From the sequence record MW825358.1: a stretch of DNA of 64,000 bases. One strand, written 5' to 3'. The stretch's first letter is position 1. Every line of letters starts with the position of its first letter. Both the position numbers and the translations under genes were made by a program. This document shows, in pieces, positions 31,157-35,181 of this stretch. The notes under the pieces are model-generated. The model did no database searches. It was not told where the DNA came from and saw nothing but the letters and a program-made list of their open reading frames with translations.

Positions 31157-31597
31157 ATGCCTAACCATCAAAAGCGCAGCCAGAATGATCAGCCGGTGTG
31201 GGATGTGCTCAACGGTCTGTCTGCAGCCGTTGGTCAGTGCACCCAGATTCCTGGACGACTCATTCCTTACTTGTCGGACAAAACCCTGCTGAGCAAGATC
31301 TCAGATCTGGGACGGTTTAACCGACTGGCCTCTACCTTACGAAACGATATCCGTCGTTTGACCGATCAGTTCCTTAGCATCCAGCAGCAGCACGCAGGGC
31401 GCACCGGGAATGTGGCCAGTCAAGACGATCTGATGGTTTCCATCCAGATTCACCAAAACTACGTTGAGTGGGCAGCGACCTTCGACGATGTAGTGATCCC
31501 CACCGTCATGGATATGTTCGAAATGATTCAGCAAGCAGGGGTCACTGACCTGCCGGCTATCAGCTCGGCCAGTCAAACGGTCGAACGCCACCATTAA
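31157..31597 (+). CDS. Conserved hypothetical protein
   Basis: 146-aa ORF. Confidence 0.65.
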   Translation: MPNHQKRSQNDQPVWDVLNGLSAAVGQCTQIPGRLIPYLSDKTLLSKISDLGRFNRLASTLRNDIRRLTDQFLSIQQQHAGRTGNVASQDDLMVSIQIHQNYVEWAATFDDVVIPTVMDMFEMIQQAGVTDLPAISSASQTVERHH

Positions 31598-31611: not shown

Positions 31612-33306
31612 ATGAGTAACGAGAACAATCCGACCTCTCAGGATGAGAGCTTTGTCGAGAACGATATTCCTCTGCCCCATGAGGTCGCCCCGGTCGCACC
31701 TGTTGCCGAACAGACGCCCGTTGTCGAGTCGATCATTGATCCGATGGTGTCTGGGACTGATGAGGCAGCGTGTTTTGAGGTGGACGAAACGCTAGACGCG
31801 CAGGCCGCGGCTGAGGCAGCCATCAACCAGATCGACGAAGAAGACGGTTATGCCGTATTCGTGCGGCGCGGTGTCAACCCCCATGCTGAGATGTCCTTTG
31901 ATCCGAGCCGACCGCTGGATCCGCGTCGCCCCTGGCGTCCGGGTGAGCATCTGAGCGTGGTGCCTTGCACGGCCGAAGAGTTTAACCACCTGGTGCAGAA
32001 TGTGGCCCGACTGGACCCGACCGGTTCAAAGACCGGTGCGCAGTGGACCCAGGCCGTCTATCAGGGTCAGGAAGTTATGCCGCGCGGTAACGCACTGGCC
32101 GGTGCGGTGACCCGTGAGACCTCTCTGTGGCGCCAAGGTGTGACCACCGGTGGTGAGGGAACGATGGACCTGATGGCAGGGCGTCCGCGCTTTGGTGAGC
32201 AGAACCAGCACAAGGCCTTGGTAGGTGATGAGGCAGTGCAGTACATGCAGGCCATGCTCGGCACCGGTCATGTCACACGCGTACCGCTGTGGCACTCCGG
32301 GATCTGGATCAACCTCAAGGCCCCGTCTGAGCAGCAGCTGCTGGAACTGGAGCGTCGCATTTCCAATGAGAAGATCTCTTTGGGTCGGGCCACCAACGGG
32401 TTGATCTTCTCCAACACGATGGTCTTCCACAACAGCTTCCTGTTCAACTTTGCCTTAGGGCTGGTGTTTGATTGCTCCATCAGCGCATTTACCACCGAAA
32501 CGCTTAAGCGCAAGATCCTGCTCACTGACCTGCCCACCTTGCTGTGGGGCTTGCTGTGTACGATCTACCCCAACGGGTACAAGTATCACCGTCCGTGCGT
32601 GAATGATCCTTCCAAGTGCACCCACGTGGCTGAGGCGATACTGGATATCATCAAGCTGTGCTGGACGGACAATACGGCCTTGACCGAAGCCCAGCGCAAG
32701 CACATGGTGCGCAAGACCGCCAAGTTCACGGATCTGGAGCTGTCTAACTATGTCAGTCAGCACAGCTACAACAGCAAGGCCACTGTGACTGTGCGTGATG
32801 TGGATGGTATCAAGACCACCGTCCAGCTGCGCGTGCCGACCCTGGCAGACTATGAACAGTCTGGCTTTAACTGGGTCGAAGGCATTGTCACGGGCACGGA
32901 TATGGCCTTTGGTTCCCAGCTGGGTGGTGAGGAGCGCAATGACTACATCATGGAACAGGCCAGTGCCACCAGCCTGAGCCAGTACGCCCACTGGGTGGAG
33001 CGTGTGAACTTCAACAACGGACTGACCTGGGTCGATGACCGGCAGACCATGGAGAAGATCATCGGCCAGCTCACTGGCGATACGCGTGCCTCGGAGTCCT
33101 TCTTGGAAGGGATGCGTGCGTTCATCAATGATGCCACCATTTCGTTGATTGCTATCCCCTCCTACAAGTGCCCAGTCTGCCAGCATGATCAGAATGATCC
33201 GGAAGAGAAGAAGCATCCGCATCTGATCCCGATCGACATTGGCACGATTTTTTTTATCCTTCTCGGCCAACGCACCCAGCTACTGCTCAATTCGGCGATC
33301 TTGTAA
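31612..33306 (+). CDS. phiKZ gp77-like protein; putative tail/baseplate assembly chaperone (gpG or T4 gp26-like)
   Basis: 564 aa; CVNDPSKC and CPVC Cys pairs; ends ...GTIFF over a T8 run. Confidence 0.55.
   Translation: MSNENNPTSQDESFVENDIPLPHEVAPVAPVAEQTPVVESIIDPMVSGTDEAACFEVDETLDAQAAAEAAINQIDEEDGYAVFVRRGVNPHAEMSFDPSRPLDPRRPWRPGEHLSVVPCTAEEFNHLVQNVARLDPTGSKTGAQWTQAVYQGQEVMPRGNALAGAVTRETSLWRQGVTTGGEGTMDLMAGRPRFGEQNQHKALVGDEAVQYMQAMLGTGHVTRVPLWHSGIWINLKAPSEQQLLELERRISNEKISLGRATNGLIFSNTMVFHNSFLFNFALGLVFDCSISAFTTETLKRKILLTDLPTLLWGLLCTIYPNGYKYHRPCVNDPSKCTHVAEAILDIIKLCWTDNTALTEAQRKHMVRKTAKFTDLELSNYVSQHSYNSKATVTVRDVDGIKTTVQLRVPTLADYEQSGFNWVEGIVTGTDMAFGSQLGGEERNDYIMEQASATSLSQYAHWVERVNFNNGLTWVDDRQTMEKIIGQLTGDTRASESFLEGMRAFINDATISLIAIPSYKCPVCQHDQNDPEEKKHPHLIPIDIGTIFFILLGQRTQLLLNSAIL
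33247..33256 (+). other. Candidate -1 programmed ribosomal frameshift site (T TTT TTT)
   Basis: ATT TTT TTT ATC; the -1 frame has no stop from here into ORF 33333-33773. Confidence 0.6.
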
Positions 33307-33332
33307 TCAATCAAGAAAGTCAGAACGGGCAC

Positions 33333-33773
33333 GTGCTCTTTCCCGGCTTTGGAGTCGAAAAAGCCAAAGACCTTGCGCCAGTCAAACAACTGGCCGAGGT
33401 CATGCGGACCGCCGAGCGCAAGACCTTAACCCCGTATGAGAGCCAGCTCTTACTGCGGGAAGCCTATGATGACACCTTTGGGATTGCCAAGCACAGTCAA
33501 TCGCGCAATCCCATGTCATTGGTCAGTGTCCAATCCTCAGAGTTGATTGGACCTTTCAGCAGACAGTATCGCTTGTACAAGCGTTTTGCCACCTTGGACA
33601 TTGGTAAACTGTTTGGCTTAAATATCACCGAGTTTCTCCAGCAGCCGCGGGAGATGATCGAATTGATGTTTGCCATTGCTGAAGAACGCACTCAGATTGA
33701 GAACCGTAACAATGACCGTGCTGAAGCCGCCTTCCAGCGTAGCTTGGACAGCGGGAGAATGCCTGCGGTTTAA
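33333..33773 (+). CDS. Probable T-part of a frameshift fusion, or a separate small protein
   Basis: Lies in the -1 frame of 31612; GTG start with weak RBS; LFGLNITEFLQQPRE resembles tail-chaperone T domains. Confidence 0.6.
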   Translation: MLFPGFGVEKAKDLAPVKQLAEVMRTAERKTLTPYESQLLLREAYDDTFGIAKHSQSRNPMSLVSVQSSELIGPFSRQYRLYKRFATLDIGKLFGLNITEFLQQPREMIELMFAIAEERTQIENRNNDRAEAAFQRSLDSGRMPAV

Positions 33774-33788
33774 CCGATTGGAGATCGC

Positions 33789-33911
33789 ATGATCGTCTAT
33801 GAAGGTCCCGGCAACTTATTTGAGTGTGGGGTACAAACCATCACGTGCAGTGAGAGCGGGAGGCAATGCCTCCCGCTCTTTTTATGGTTCCGAATAAGTT
33901 CACACCCTTAA
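33789..33911 (+). pseudogene. Orphaned original 5' end of the macrodomain gene
   Basis: GGAG RBS; MIVYEGPGNLFECGVQTITCS matches MIIYEGPGDLFSCGMQCITCS at 34723 (16/21 aa), then runs into a terminator. Confidence 0.88.
33853..33883 (+). terminator. Intrinsic terminator at the edge of the HNH insertion
   Basis: AGAGCGGGAGGC-AAT-GCCTCCCGCTCT-TTTT. Confidence 0.85.
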
Positions 33912-33958: not shown

Positions 33959-34726
33959 ATGAGAATTGATGTTACCGGCCAGCGTTTTGGACGATTGGTG
34001 GCTCTTAGTCACCGCCAGGTCGCAGTGGGGAATCGCAAATATATTCGCTGGCTTTGCCGGTGTGATTGCGGTAATTTGACAGAAGTACTTCTGTCAAATC
34101 TCAAAAATGGCAACTGCTCTAGTTGCGGATGTCTTAGTAAGGAGCGAGTTGCTTCTTTAAATAAGACACACGGAATGTCAGGCACAAGGGAGTATGCGGC
34201 ATGGGGCGCCATGATCTCACGATGCCACAATCCCAATGCTCAGGCCTTGGATAATTACGGCGGACGGGGAATTTCAGTTTGTGAGCGCTGGCGCAGCTCC
34301 TTTGAGAATTTTTACAATGACATGGGCCCTCGCCCCTCTGATGAACACTCCATCGAACGCCGCAACGTCAACGGTAACTACGAACCGGGTAACTGTTACT
34401 GGGCCACTGCCGATGTTCAAGCCAACAACCGACGGAACACCCTGTATGTTGAGTACCTAGGGGAAAGACTCACCGTAATGGCCCTTTCAGAGAAAACGGG
34501 GGTTCCTTATCAAAAGCTGTATGAAAGGATCTATCGGTTGGGGCAGTCGGTTGAAGAAGCCATCAGACCAGATCAAGAAGTGAAGTTATACGAAGGGTTC
34601 GGTAAGAAACTTAGTCTCAAGCAATGGGCGGTGGAACTCAACATGAACTACTACACGCTCTACGACAGGTTCAAAACCCACGGCTCGATTGAAAAAGCAG
34701 TAAAGAAACCTGTGAGGTCCAGATGA
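33959..34726 (+). mobile_element. Free-standing HNH homing endonuclease
   Basis: RIDVTGQRFGRL, CRCDCG, SCGC, YGGRGISVCERW, SIERRNVNGNYEPGNCYWAT...QANNRR, with C-terminal HTH-like repeats. Confidence 0.9.
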
Positions 34727-35181
34727 TCATATACGAGGGACCGGGAGATCTATTCAGCTGCGGCATGCAATGTATAACTTGCTCGATAAATACTGTCGGT
34801 GCGATGGGAAAAGGGATTGCATTGGAGTTCAAGCGTCTAGTGCCAGGGCTGTATGAATACTACCGCCAGCACTATCATGATAAACCTCCACTGTTTCCCA
34901 GTGTCAATAAAGTGCTAGTCTACAACGTCGATGCCGAGCGCAAGGTGTTGTTACTGCCCACCAAAGACCACTGGGTATATCCTTCCAAAGTAGAACTGAT
35001 TGATCGCAATTTGCAGGTGCTCACCGAAACCTATCGGGAGCTTGGAATTGAATCCCTAGGACTGCCGTTGATTGGCTGCGGCCATAATACCGGACAGCTT
35101 TCCTGGGAGCGTCAAGTTCGACCTTTGGTCTATCAGCACTTGGATCCCTTACCGATCCCTGTAAAGATCCTGACAGGCTGA
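34723..35181 (+). CDS. Macrodomain ADP-ribosylglycohydrolase (DarG/Appr-1-p-like)
   Basis: GDLF, INTVGAMGKGIALEFK, PTKDHW and LGLPLIGCG motifs. Confidence 0.88.
   Translation: MIIYEGPGDLFSCGMQCITCSINTVGAMGKGIALEFKRLVPGLYEYYRQHYHDKPPLFPSVNKVLVYNVDAERKVLLLPTKDHWVYPSKVELIDRNLQVLTETYRELGIESLGLPLIGCGHNTGQLSWERQVRPLVYQHLDPLPIPVKILTG

Follow-up and report, generated by a model that had tools for sequence, protein, structure and literature searches.

Reading Frames at the cg18 Locus of Phage LucasX

The stretch of DNA analyzed here (64,000 nucleotides (nt), called the window) was shown by megablast to originate from Xanthomonas phage vB_XciM_LucasX (accession no. MW825358.1; 305,651 base pairs (bp)), and window positions correspond to MW825358.1 positions minus 62,000. 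It includes two consecutive open reading frames (ORFs), LUCX_94 and LUCX_95, both labeled 'hypothetical protein' in GenBank, which are described here as a candidate for a single gene expressed by programmed -1 frameshifting. LUCX_94 is the Chimalliviridae core gene cg18, which belongs to the phiKZ gp077 family. The features of the pair are as follows (protein lengths in amino acids, aa):

31612..33306, + strand: LUCX_94, 0-frame ORF of 564 aa, encodes the short isoform; phiKZ gp77/Chimalliviridae cg18 family
33249..33255, + strand: slippery heptamer T_TTT_TTT, proposed site of the -1 shift; tRNA-Phe would occupy both the P and the A site
33256..33306, + strand: 0-frame tail, 16 codons and stop, the conserved C-terminal helix of the short isoform
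33255..33773, + strand: -1 frame extension, 172 codons and stop; a variable linker, then a conserved helical domain of unknown fold
33333..33773, + strand: LUCX_95 as annotated, 146 aa, GTG start; matches phrog_12109

An earlier examination of the window from its letters alone (the sequence-only reading) had drawn attention to a run of eight T near the end of the 564-aa gene. This run is present at 33248-33255, where the 0 frame reads ATT TTT TTT ATC as had been described, and the heptamer T_TTT_TTT (33249-33255) sits in the X_XXY_YYZ register of the LUCX_94 frame. The heptamer is followed by 16 sense codons and then the LUCX_94 stop. The -1 frame had been noticed to be open from the run into the ORF at 33333; it was found to be open for 172 codons from 33255, with its stop at 33771-33773, and takes in the whole GTG ORF (33333-33773). 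Summing the 0-frame part before the site (548 residues) and the -1 part gives ~720 residues, the size that had been estimated for a fusion protein. The 0-frame tail overlaps the start of the -1 extension, and the overlapping stretch is read in two frames. The genes had been called a gp77/gp76-like pair, which is right for gp77; the downstream ORF is PHIKZ076.4, not gp76, in the phiKZ RefSeq record.

Conservation of the Two-Frame Layout

Homologues of LUCX_94 were found by tblastn in 221 jumbo-phage records, and a profile search of 1.84 billion representatives gave 1,708 clusters at E ≤0.001. For a comparison of the frames, related loci were pooled from IMG/VR (49), metagenomes (80), and GenBank/RefSeq records (18), and the two Phe codons of the site were located by tblastn. 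This resulted in 117 distinct loci with the site mapped, including 112 complete ones with both stops present, at 27-63% identity and with GC contents from 0.26 to 0.61.

All complete loci except for one showed the same organization: a 0-frame tail of 8-44 codons (median 15) and, starting from the site, a -1 frame without a stop for 144-181 codons (median 166), compared to a median open length of 10 codons for the +1 control frame. In the five loci cut by a contig end, the -1 frame was open up to the cut. Because the GC contents span 0.26-0.61, the two-frame pattern is not a composition effect, and inside gene bodies a -1 frame open for ≥150 codons was found at just 1.4% of positions. The downstream protein was recognized by tblastn in 36 loci, and 35 of these encode it in the -1 frame. 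The pattern was shown by the cultured phages phiKZ, PhiPA3, 201phi2-1, Goslar, RAY, PCH45, PA_ZH1, Eowyn, FLC9, Xoo-sp14, SA002 and AH06, and by Bacillus phage AgentSmith. The longest 0-frame tail of the set (44 codons) was that of Serratia phage PCH45 (accession no. MN334766.1), in which the heptamer and a 173-codon -1 ORF are kept.

No in-frame fusion of the two parts was detected among 91 word-indexed homologues (482-671 aa) or among the best 150 of the 1,708 cluster representatives, all of which stop within about 20 residues or less of the profile end. A single base change would be enough to fuse both parts, and the persistence of the two-frame state thus argues that both products are wanted. 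LUCX_94 itself matches phrog_4585 (E 2.7e-112) with profile position 545 of 551 aligned at residue 562, which indicates that the short 0-frame tail is the normal C-terminus of the family.

The sole exception among the 112 loci was Xanthomonas phage RTH11 (accession no. OQ790161.1), the nearest cultured relative (56% identity). As deposited, its orthologue contains one frameshift compared to every other member, and the annotated 627-aa ORF ends in non-homologous sequence and continues in a frame that matches neither of the conserved continuations. Either an assembly artefact or a true variant could account for this break. Homopolymer runs are error-prone, and with the nearest cultured relative differing from all others in its frame relations, one might ask whether the LucasX run is a sequencing error that splits one continuous ORF of ~720 aa. 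This explanation can practically be discounted: independent assemblies produced by many laboratories on many platforms show the two-frame layout in 111 of 112 cases, and the 0-frame codons that follow the run are conserved too and align with the end of the PHROG profile. The sequence-only reading had made its proposal depend on conservation of the run and of the open -1 bridge in relatives; both are kept in 111 of 112 loci, and the comparison gives strong support to a programmed -1 frameshift joining the 564-aa gene to the downstream ORF.

Nucleotide Constraint at the Slippery Site

A canonical X_XXY_YYZ heptamer was present in 103 of 111 loci. It was TTTTTTT in 65 and TTTTTTC in 36 of these, with one TTTTTTA (Bacillus phage AgentSmith) and one GGGTTTT. 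At the protein level, F547 was invariant among 44 sequences and both F548 and R554 were ≥90% conserved. Codon usage was compared across 31 lineages with <50% identity, and expected shares were taken from each gene's own codon usage. Codon 547 was TTT in 30 of the 31 lineages (product of expected shares 10^-16.9), and codon 546 ended in T in 25 of them (10^-17.3); these products are not true probabilities, since the lineages share ancestry, but synonymous sites are saturated at such distances. Elsewhere in the same genes, just 249 of 784 Phe codons were TTT, and in eight genes the TTT at the site is the only one. The residue at codon 546 was one of seven (Val, Ile, Leu, Thr, Ala, Ser, or Gly). 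T runs elsewhere in the surveyed genes did not exceed 5, compared to 5-9 at the site. Judged from these alignments, the nucleotides at the site are constrained beyond what the protein needs.

The Downstream ORF Lacks a Start of Its Own

According to the annotation, LUCX_94 and LUCX_95 are two independent genes, the second of which would be translated from the GTG at 33333, perhaps by termination coupling, and the T run would be nothing else than two Phe codons. All GenBank/RefSeq records examined treat the pair in this way, the LucasX GTG is located 27 nt after the LUCX_94 stop, and both Phe residues are conserved in the protein. However, the need for two Phe residues does not explain the use of TTT over TTC or the T that ends codon 546, and the downstream sequences are not organized as an independent gene would be. 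In an alignment of 40 -1 ORFs, conservation starts at an H-V-x-x-P-x-F-G motif. The annotated GTG of LUCX_95 is the valine codon of this motif, and the histidine that precedes it is also conserved, so that the conservation begins ahead of the GTG. In 27 of the 40 ORFs, no ATG, GTG, or TTG was found up to and including the position of the conserved Phe in the motif; the stretch free of start codons comprises 84 codons in phiKZ and 150 of the 154 codons in the IMG/VR locus L029. No Shine-Dalgarno-like sequence was seen by eye upstream of candidate starts.

The linker that connects the site to the motif is 13-36 codons long (~25 residues in LucasX, predicted to be disordered), but the insertions and deletions are always whole codons and the frame relation outlives them. 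Annotated lengths of the downstream ORF differ considerably, from 68 aa in AH06, 77 aa in AgentSmith and 80 aa in phiKZ (PHIKZ076.4) to 182 aa in RAY, where it overlaps the upstream gene by 136 nt, because a start codon falls by chance at different places; the number of open codons is in contrast constant at 144-181. Two independent genes are therefore a very improbable explanation for the locus, and we read LUCX_95 as what is probably an internal piece of the -1 extension rather than a gene of its own.

In the records of phiKZ (accession no. NC_004629.1), AH06, AgentSmith, RAY, and PA_ZH1, the apparent 'intergenic gaps' of 117-219 nt after the gp77-like gene were found to be -1 frame coding sequence. 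None of the 18 GenBank/RefSeq records of the family contained a joined coding sequence for the pair.

Stimulatory RNA Elements

The sequence-only reading had seen no obvious stimulatory structure downstream of the run, and for LucasX this holds: the 120 nt after the run were shown to fold no better than shuffled sequences (z = -0.36), the 50-nt window after the site ranked at the 96th percentile among the windows of the gene itself and was thus unusually unstructured, and no Rfam match was found at the site. A stimulatory structure common to the whole family was not found either, the median folding energy of the site window being at the 68th percentile of the gene's own windows.

A different picture was obtained for a sub-clade with T_TTT_TTC sites (IMG/VR loci L024, L027, L029, L030, L031, and L032). 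These contain a hairpin with a 10-bp stem and a 19-nt loop that begins 7-9 nt after the heptamer. It extends from ~7 to 55 nt after the heptamer, includes two compensatory pairs, and contains the 0-frame stop in its 3′ arm. Among all TTC-type sites, 35% were in the lowest decile of folding energy, compared to 11% of the TTT-type sites (10% by definition). Hairpins are thus commoner in shorter-run lineages, and none was found in long-run lineages. This pattern fits ribosomal frameshifting in the short-run lineages, and it leaves room for a contribution of polymerase slippage where the run consists of 8-9 T.

Proposed Mechanism and Expression Data

In the mechanism proposed here, most ribosomes would pass T_TTT_TTT in the 0 frame and stop 16 codons further on, which would give the 564-aa protein with its last ~20 residues forming the conserved helix. 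A fraction of the ribosomes would slip back by one base on the heptamer, where both tRNA-Phe could re-pair perfectly with UUU, and would read 172 codons in the -1 frame. In the resulting protein of ~720 aa, a flexible linker and the conserved helical domain would replace the terminal helix. As translation cannot start within the extension independently, the rate of the slip would set the ratio of the two isoforms.

The anatomy of the locus and its conservation are observed; that the slip is made by the ribosome, and how efficient it is, is what we infer from them. The main alternative is slippage of the polymerase, which would add one U on the T run so that a fraction of the mRNAs is read straight into the extension. 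T8-T9 runs are long enough for polymerase slippage in bacteria. Such runs are present in LucasX and in roughly one in five of the first 53 loci examined, the long-run lineages show no downstream hairpin, and transcription may be performed by phage multisubunit polymerases. On the other hand, about a third of the lineages contain just T6-T7 followed by C in exact X_XXY_YYZ register, which is short for a polymerase and ideal for tRNA-Phe. Besides, conservation extends to the register in which the run lies in the reading frame, a feature of importance to ribosomes and not to a polymerase, and one sub-clade has its hairpin at the classical 7-9 nt spacing. Transcriptional slippage is thus considered unlikely, though less so than two independent genes.

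Several observations weigh against a ribosomal frameshift. A protein spanning the site has not yet been observed. No downstream hairpin is present in LucasX or in most T7-T9 lineages, and an upstream Shine-Dalgarno-like stimulator was not seen by eye. In 8 of 111 loci the first position of the heptamer is off, mostly as G_TTT_TTY, and re-pairing in the P site would be imperfect there. The T8-T9 runs would also allow RNA polymerase slippage, from which the same protein would result. In Goslar virion preparations analyzed by mass spectrometry, gp081 was detected with 24 peptides (~22 copies) and gp082 with 1 peptide (~3 copies; 10.64898/2026.04.21.720040). The extension is thus represented by a single peptide, and the preparation also contained the non-virion proteins chimallin, PhuZ, and thymidylate synthase (10.64898/2026.04.21.720040). 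Although it is one peptide only, the gp082 peptide indicates that translation reaches the extension in at least one phage, with a signal about one seventh that of the upstream part.

On balance, the frame comparison and the nucleotide constraint make it likely that LUCX_94 and LUCX_95 are one gene recoded by programmed -1 ribosomal frameshifting. If polymerase slippage is counted as an alternative route to the same products, an outcome with two isoforms is very likely.

It is doubtful whether cg18 is a virion protein. The Churi homologue gp256 was listed among non-structural proteins present 15 min after infection (PMC11849849), and the 201phi2-1 record has virion mass spectrometry marks on gp138 and gp139 and none on gp135-137.

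Protein Family, Structure, and Possible Function

The PhiPA3 record names phiKZ gp077, 201phi2-1 gp136, and EL gp47 as homologues. In the Chimalliviridae core-gene table of a published supplement, cg18 is given as Goslar gp081, phiKZ gp077, and RAY gp267 and is called 'hypothetical protein' (10.1101/2023.02.24.529968, supplement). The core-gene list has no downstream ORF beside cg18.

An AlphaFold2 (AF2) model of the 564-aa protein had a predicted local distance difference test score (pLDDT) of 81 and a predicted template modeling score (pTM) of 0.79, with the N-terminal 80 residues disordered. The last helix of the model comprises residues 543-563 and begins just ahead of the site, which means that a shift replaces this helix. 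The model of the extension was poor (pLDDT 65, pTM 0.39) and consisted of ~38 disordered residues followed by helices. Four cysteines are invariant in the cg18 family (C329, C336, C520, and C523, the last two within a C-P-x-C motif), and their pattern suggests a zinc site.

No Pfam family was found for either part, with single proteins or with all alignment members as queries, and both parts matched solely families of unknown function in PHROGs. A sequence-profile search of the PDB gave no match, and a PDB fold search with the 564-aa model gave nothing below E = 1. When the 564-aa model was compared to BFVD with Foldseek, its own family was found first, followed by weaker matches to predicted models of ~250 aa (E 5e-5 to 1e-2; target-normalized template modeling score about 0.5) named 'baseplate hub assembly protein, T4-like', 'baseplate hub subunit', and 'baseplate hub assembly chaperone'. 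The same search with the extension matched solely uncharacterized jumbo-phage orthologues and no T4 hub protein. The structure comparison that had been suggested in the sequence-only reading, to T4-type hub proteins and to tail assembly chaperone (TAC) folds, thus gave a weak fold likeness to predicted models for the former and no match in the PDB for the latter.

The likeness to hub proteins was not recovered in profile comparisons. None of 44 family members gave a hit to PF12322 (T4_baseplate) at E up to 1, compared to 187 bits for the DLP6 comparator. The hhalign probability for the family against the PF12322-type protein was 0.6%, which leaves a profile link unconfirmed. A scan for further PF12322-type comparators gave just two IMG/VR loci, and against the three-sequence alignment of these with DLP6 the hhalign probability was 6% over 29 columns, with one motif in common (L-R/K-x-P-T). 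A hub-assembly name has already been used for the family by the annotators of AgentSmith, AH06, MJ359, and pEa_SNUABM_43. As for the role of the protein, we infer from the models no more firmly than as a possibility, and a rather doubtful one, that cg18 may be an assembly factor of baseplate hub type.

Comparison with Known Recoded Systems

The sequence-only reading had likened the pair to the tail chaperones G/GT of lambda and E/E' of P2. The expression logic of this proposal, a short product and a C-terminally extended trans-frame product, was retained, whereas the family identity was not. Similar to lambda G/GT and P2 E/E+E', the cg18 locus has overlapping ORFs with a heptamer near the end of the first and a second ORF without a start of its own, a short protein and a trans-frame protein with an extended C-terminus are predicted, and the layout is conserved where the sequence is not. 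Xu, Hendrix and Duda reportedly described such a conserved -1 frameshift in tail assembly chaperone genes in 2004. The upstream part is, however, 548 aa here, about four to five times larger than a G-like part of about 100-150 aa; the locus is found beside virion RNA polymerase genes and not between the tail tube and tape measure genes; the Churi homologue is already found at 15 min after infection, an early time for a tail chaperone; and cg18 has no Pfam, PDB-sequence, or PDB-fold match to any chaperone family. An identity as a lambda G/GT-type tail chaperone is not supported: neither the size of the gene nor its place in the genome nor its family fits.

A likeness to the T4 proteins gp26 and gp51, which are listed as hub assembly chaperones in a T4 tail review (PMC3004832), consists of the weak BFVD fold resemblance and the single hhalign motif L-R/K-x-P-T. 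The cg18 protein is, by contrast, twice the size, contains the four invariant cysteines, and has no PF12322 hit. To our knowledge, no frameshift has been described for the genes of gp26 and gp51; T4 gene 26 is said to give two products by internal initiation. That cg18 is the Chimalliviridae counterpart of T4 gp26/gp51-type hub factors, with a frameshift isoform acting as GT does for lambda, is an improbable proposal, and more so than a hub-type role as such.

The T7 capsid proteins 10A/10B and the capsid and tail proteins of Listeria phage PSA are similar in that a fixed minor fraction of the protein gains a C-terminal domain by recoding near the stop. They are abundant virion proteins with known roles, unlike cg18 with its doubtful virion membership. 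The extension of the PSA capsid and tail proteins by frameshifting was reportedly found by Zimmer et al. in 2003. In dnaX of E. coli, a -1 shift on a homopolymeric heptamer likewise gives two isoforms, tau and gamma, in a set ratio. The shifted product is the shorter one in dnaX and would be the longer one in cg18. The dnaX site is flanked by a Shine-Dalgarno-like element upstream and a hairpin downstream, whereas LucasX has no hairpin and no upstream element was seen by eye.

Novelty and Implications

A frameshift of this kind had been thought to be unassigned in Chimalliviridae, which agrees with the literature and the 18 GenBank/RefSeq records that were searched. No report of a cg18 frameshift was found in the literature searched on phiKZ-like and Chimalliviridae jumbo phages, where matches for 'gp77' were due to the gene numbering of other phages. 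In the 18 records, the locus is given as a pair of unrelated hypothetical genes, and an arbitrary start is assigned to the second one.

Provided that the frameshift is real, the locus would have to be annotated as one recoded gene in hundreds of genomes, and the extension would join cg18 in the core set. A core gene would then have two isoforms in a set ratio, a pattern that is typical of assembly factors and scaffolds, and this provides a concrete handle for finding the role of cg18. It would also add a deeply conserved U-run recoding site in phages with hosts from Bacillus to Pseudomonas. Should the hub-factor proposal turn out to be true, chaperone stoichiometry set by frameshifting would be common to long-tailed phages and the largest contractile-tailed phages, by way of an unrelated and much larger protein, and a missing assembly factor of the phiKZ-type tail would be identified.

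Genome Context and Neighboring Genes

LUCX_94 and LUCX_95 are part of a transcription unit that includes two further features:

31157..31597, + strand: LUCX_93, phiKZ gp78-like gene, the first gene of the LUCX_93-94-95 transcription unit
33852..33880, + strand: intrinsic terminator closing the LUCX_93-94-95 unit, a 13-bp stem followed by a T tract; also in the GenBank record

The surroundings of the cg18 locus include gp78-like and gp79-like genes, a gene for virion RNA polymerase beta, the terminator, an HNH endonuclease gene, and a macro-domain gene. The gp78-like gene adjoins the cg18 homologue also in PhiPA3, phiKZ, 201phi2-1, Goslar, RAY, and others, and synteny is kept, with the gp78-like gene upstream and with gp79 and the virion RNA polymerase subunit gp80 transcribed divergently.

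The HNH endonuclease ORF (33959-34726; phrog_374 match, E 1.6e-70) is located between the extension ORF and the intact macro-domain gene (34723-35181), which is 70% identical to its RTH11 counterpart. The region 33789-33851, directly before the terminator, was found to be a 21-codon copy of the 5′ end of the macro-domain gene. In RTH11 and Goslar, the macro-domain gene follows directly after the extension with no HNH gene between them. The HNH gene of LucasX looks like a homing-endonuclease insertion that duplicated its target. This gene is annotated as LUCX_96 from position 34175 (183 aa); the open frame from 33959 encodes 255 aa and the HNH PHROG profile is matched from residue 2, and the annotated start is probably too far downstream.

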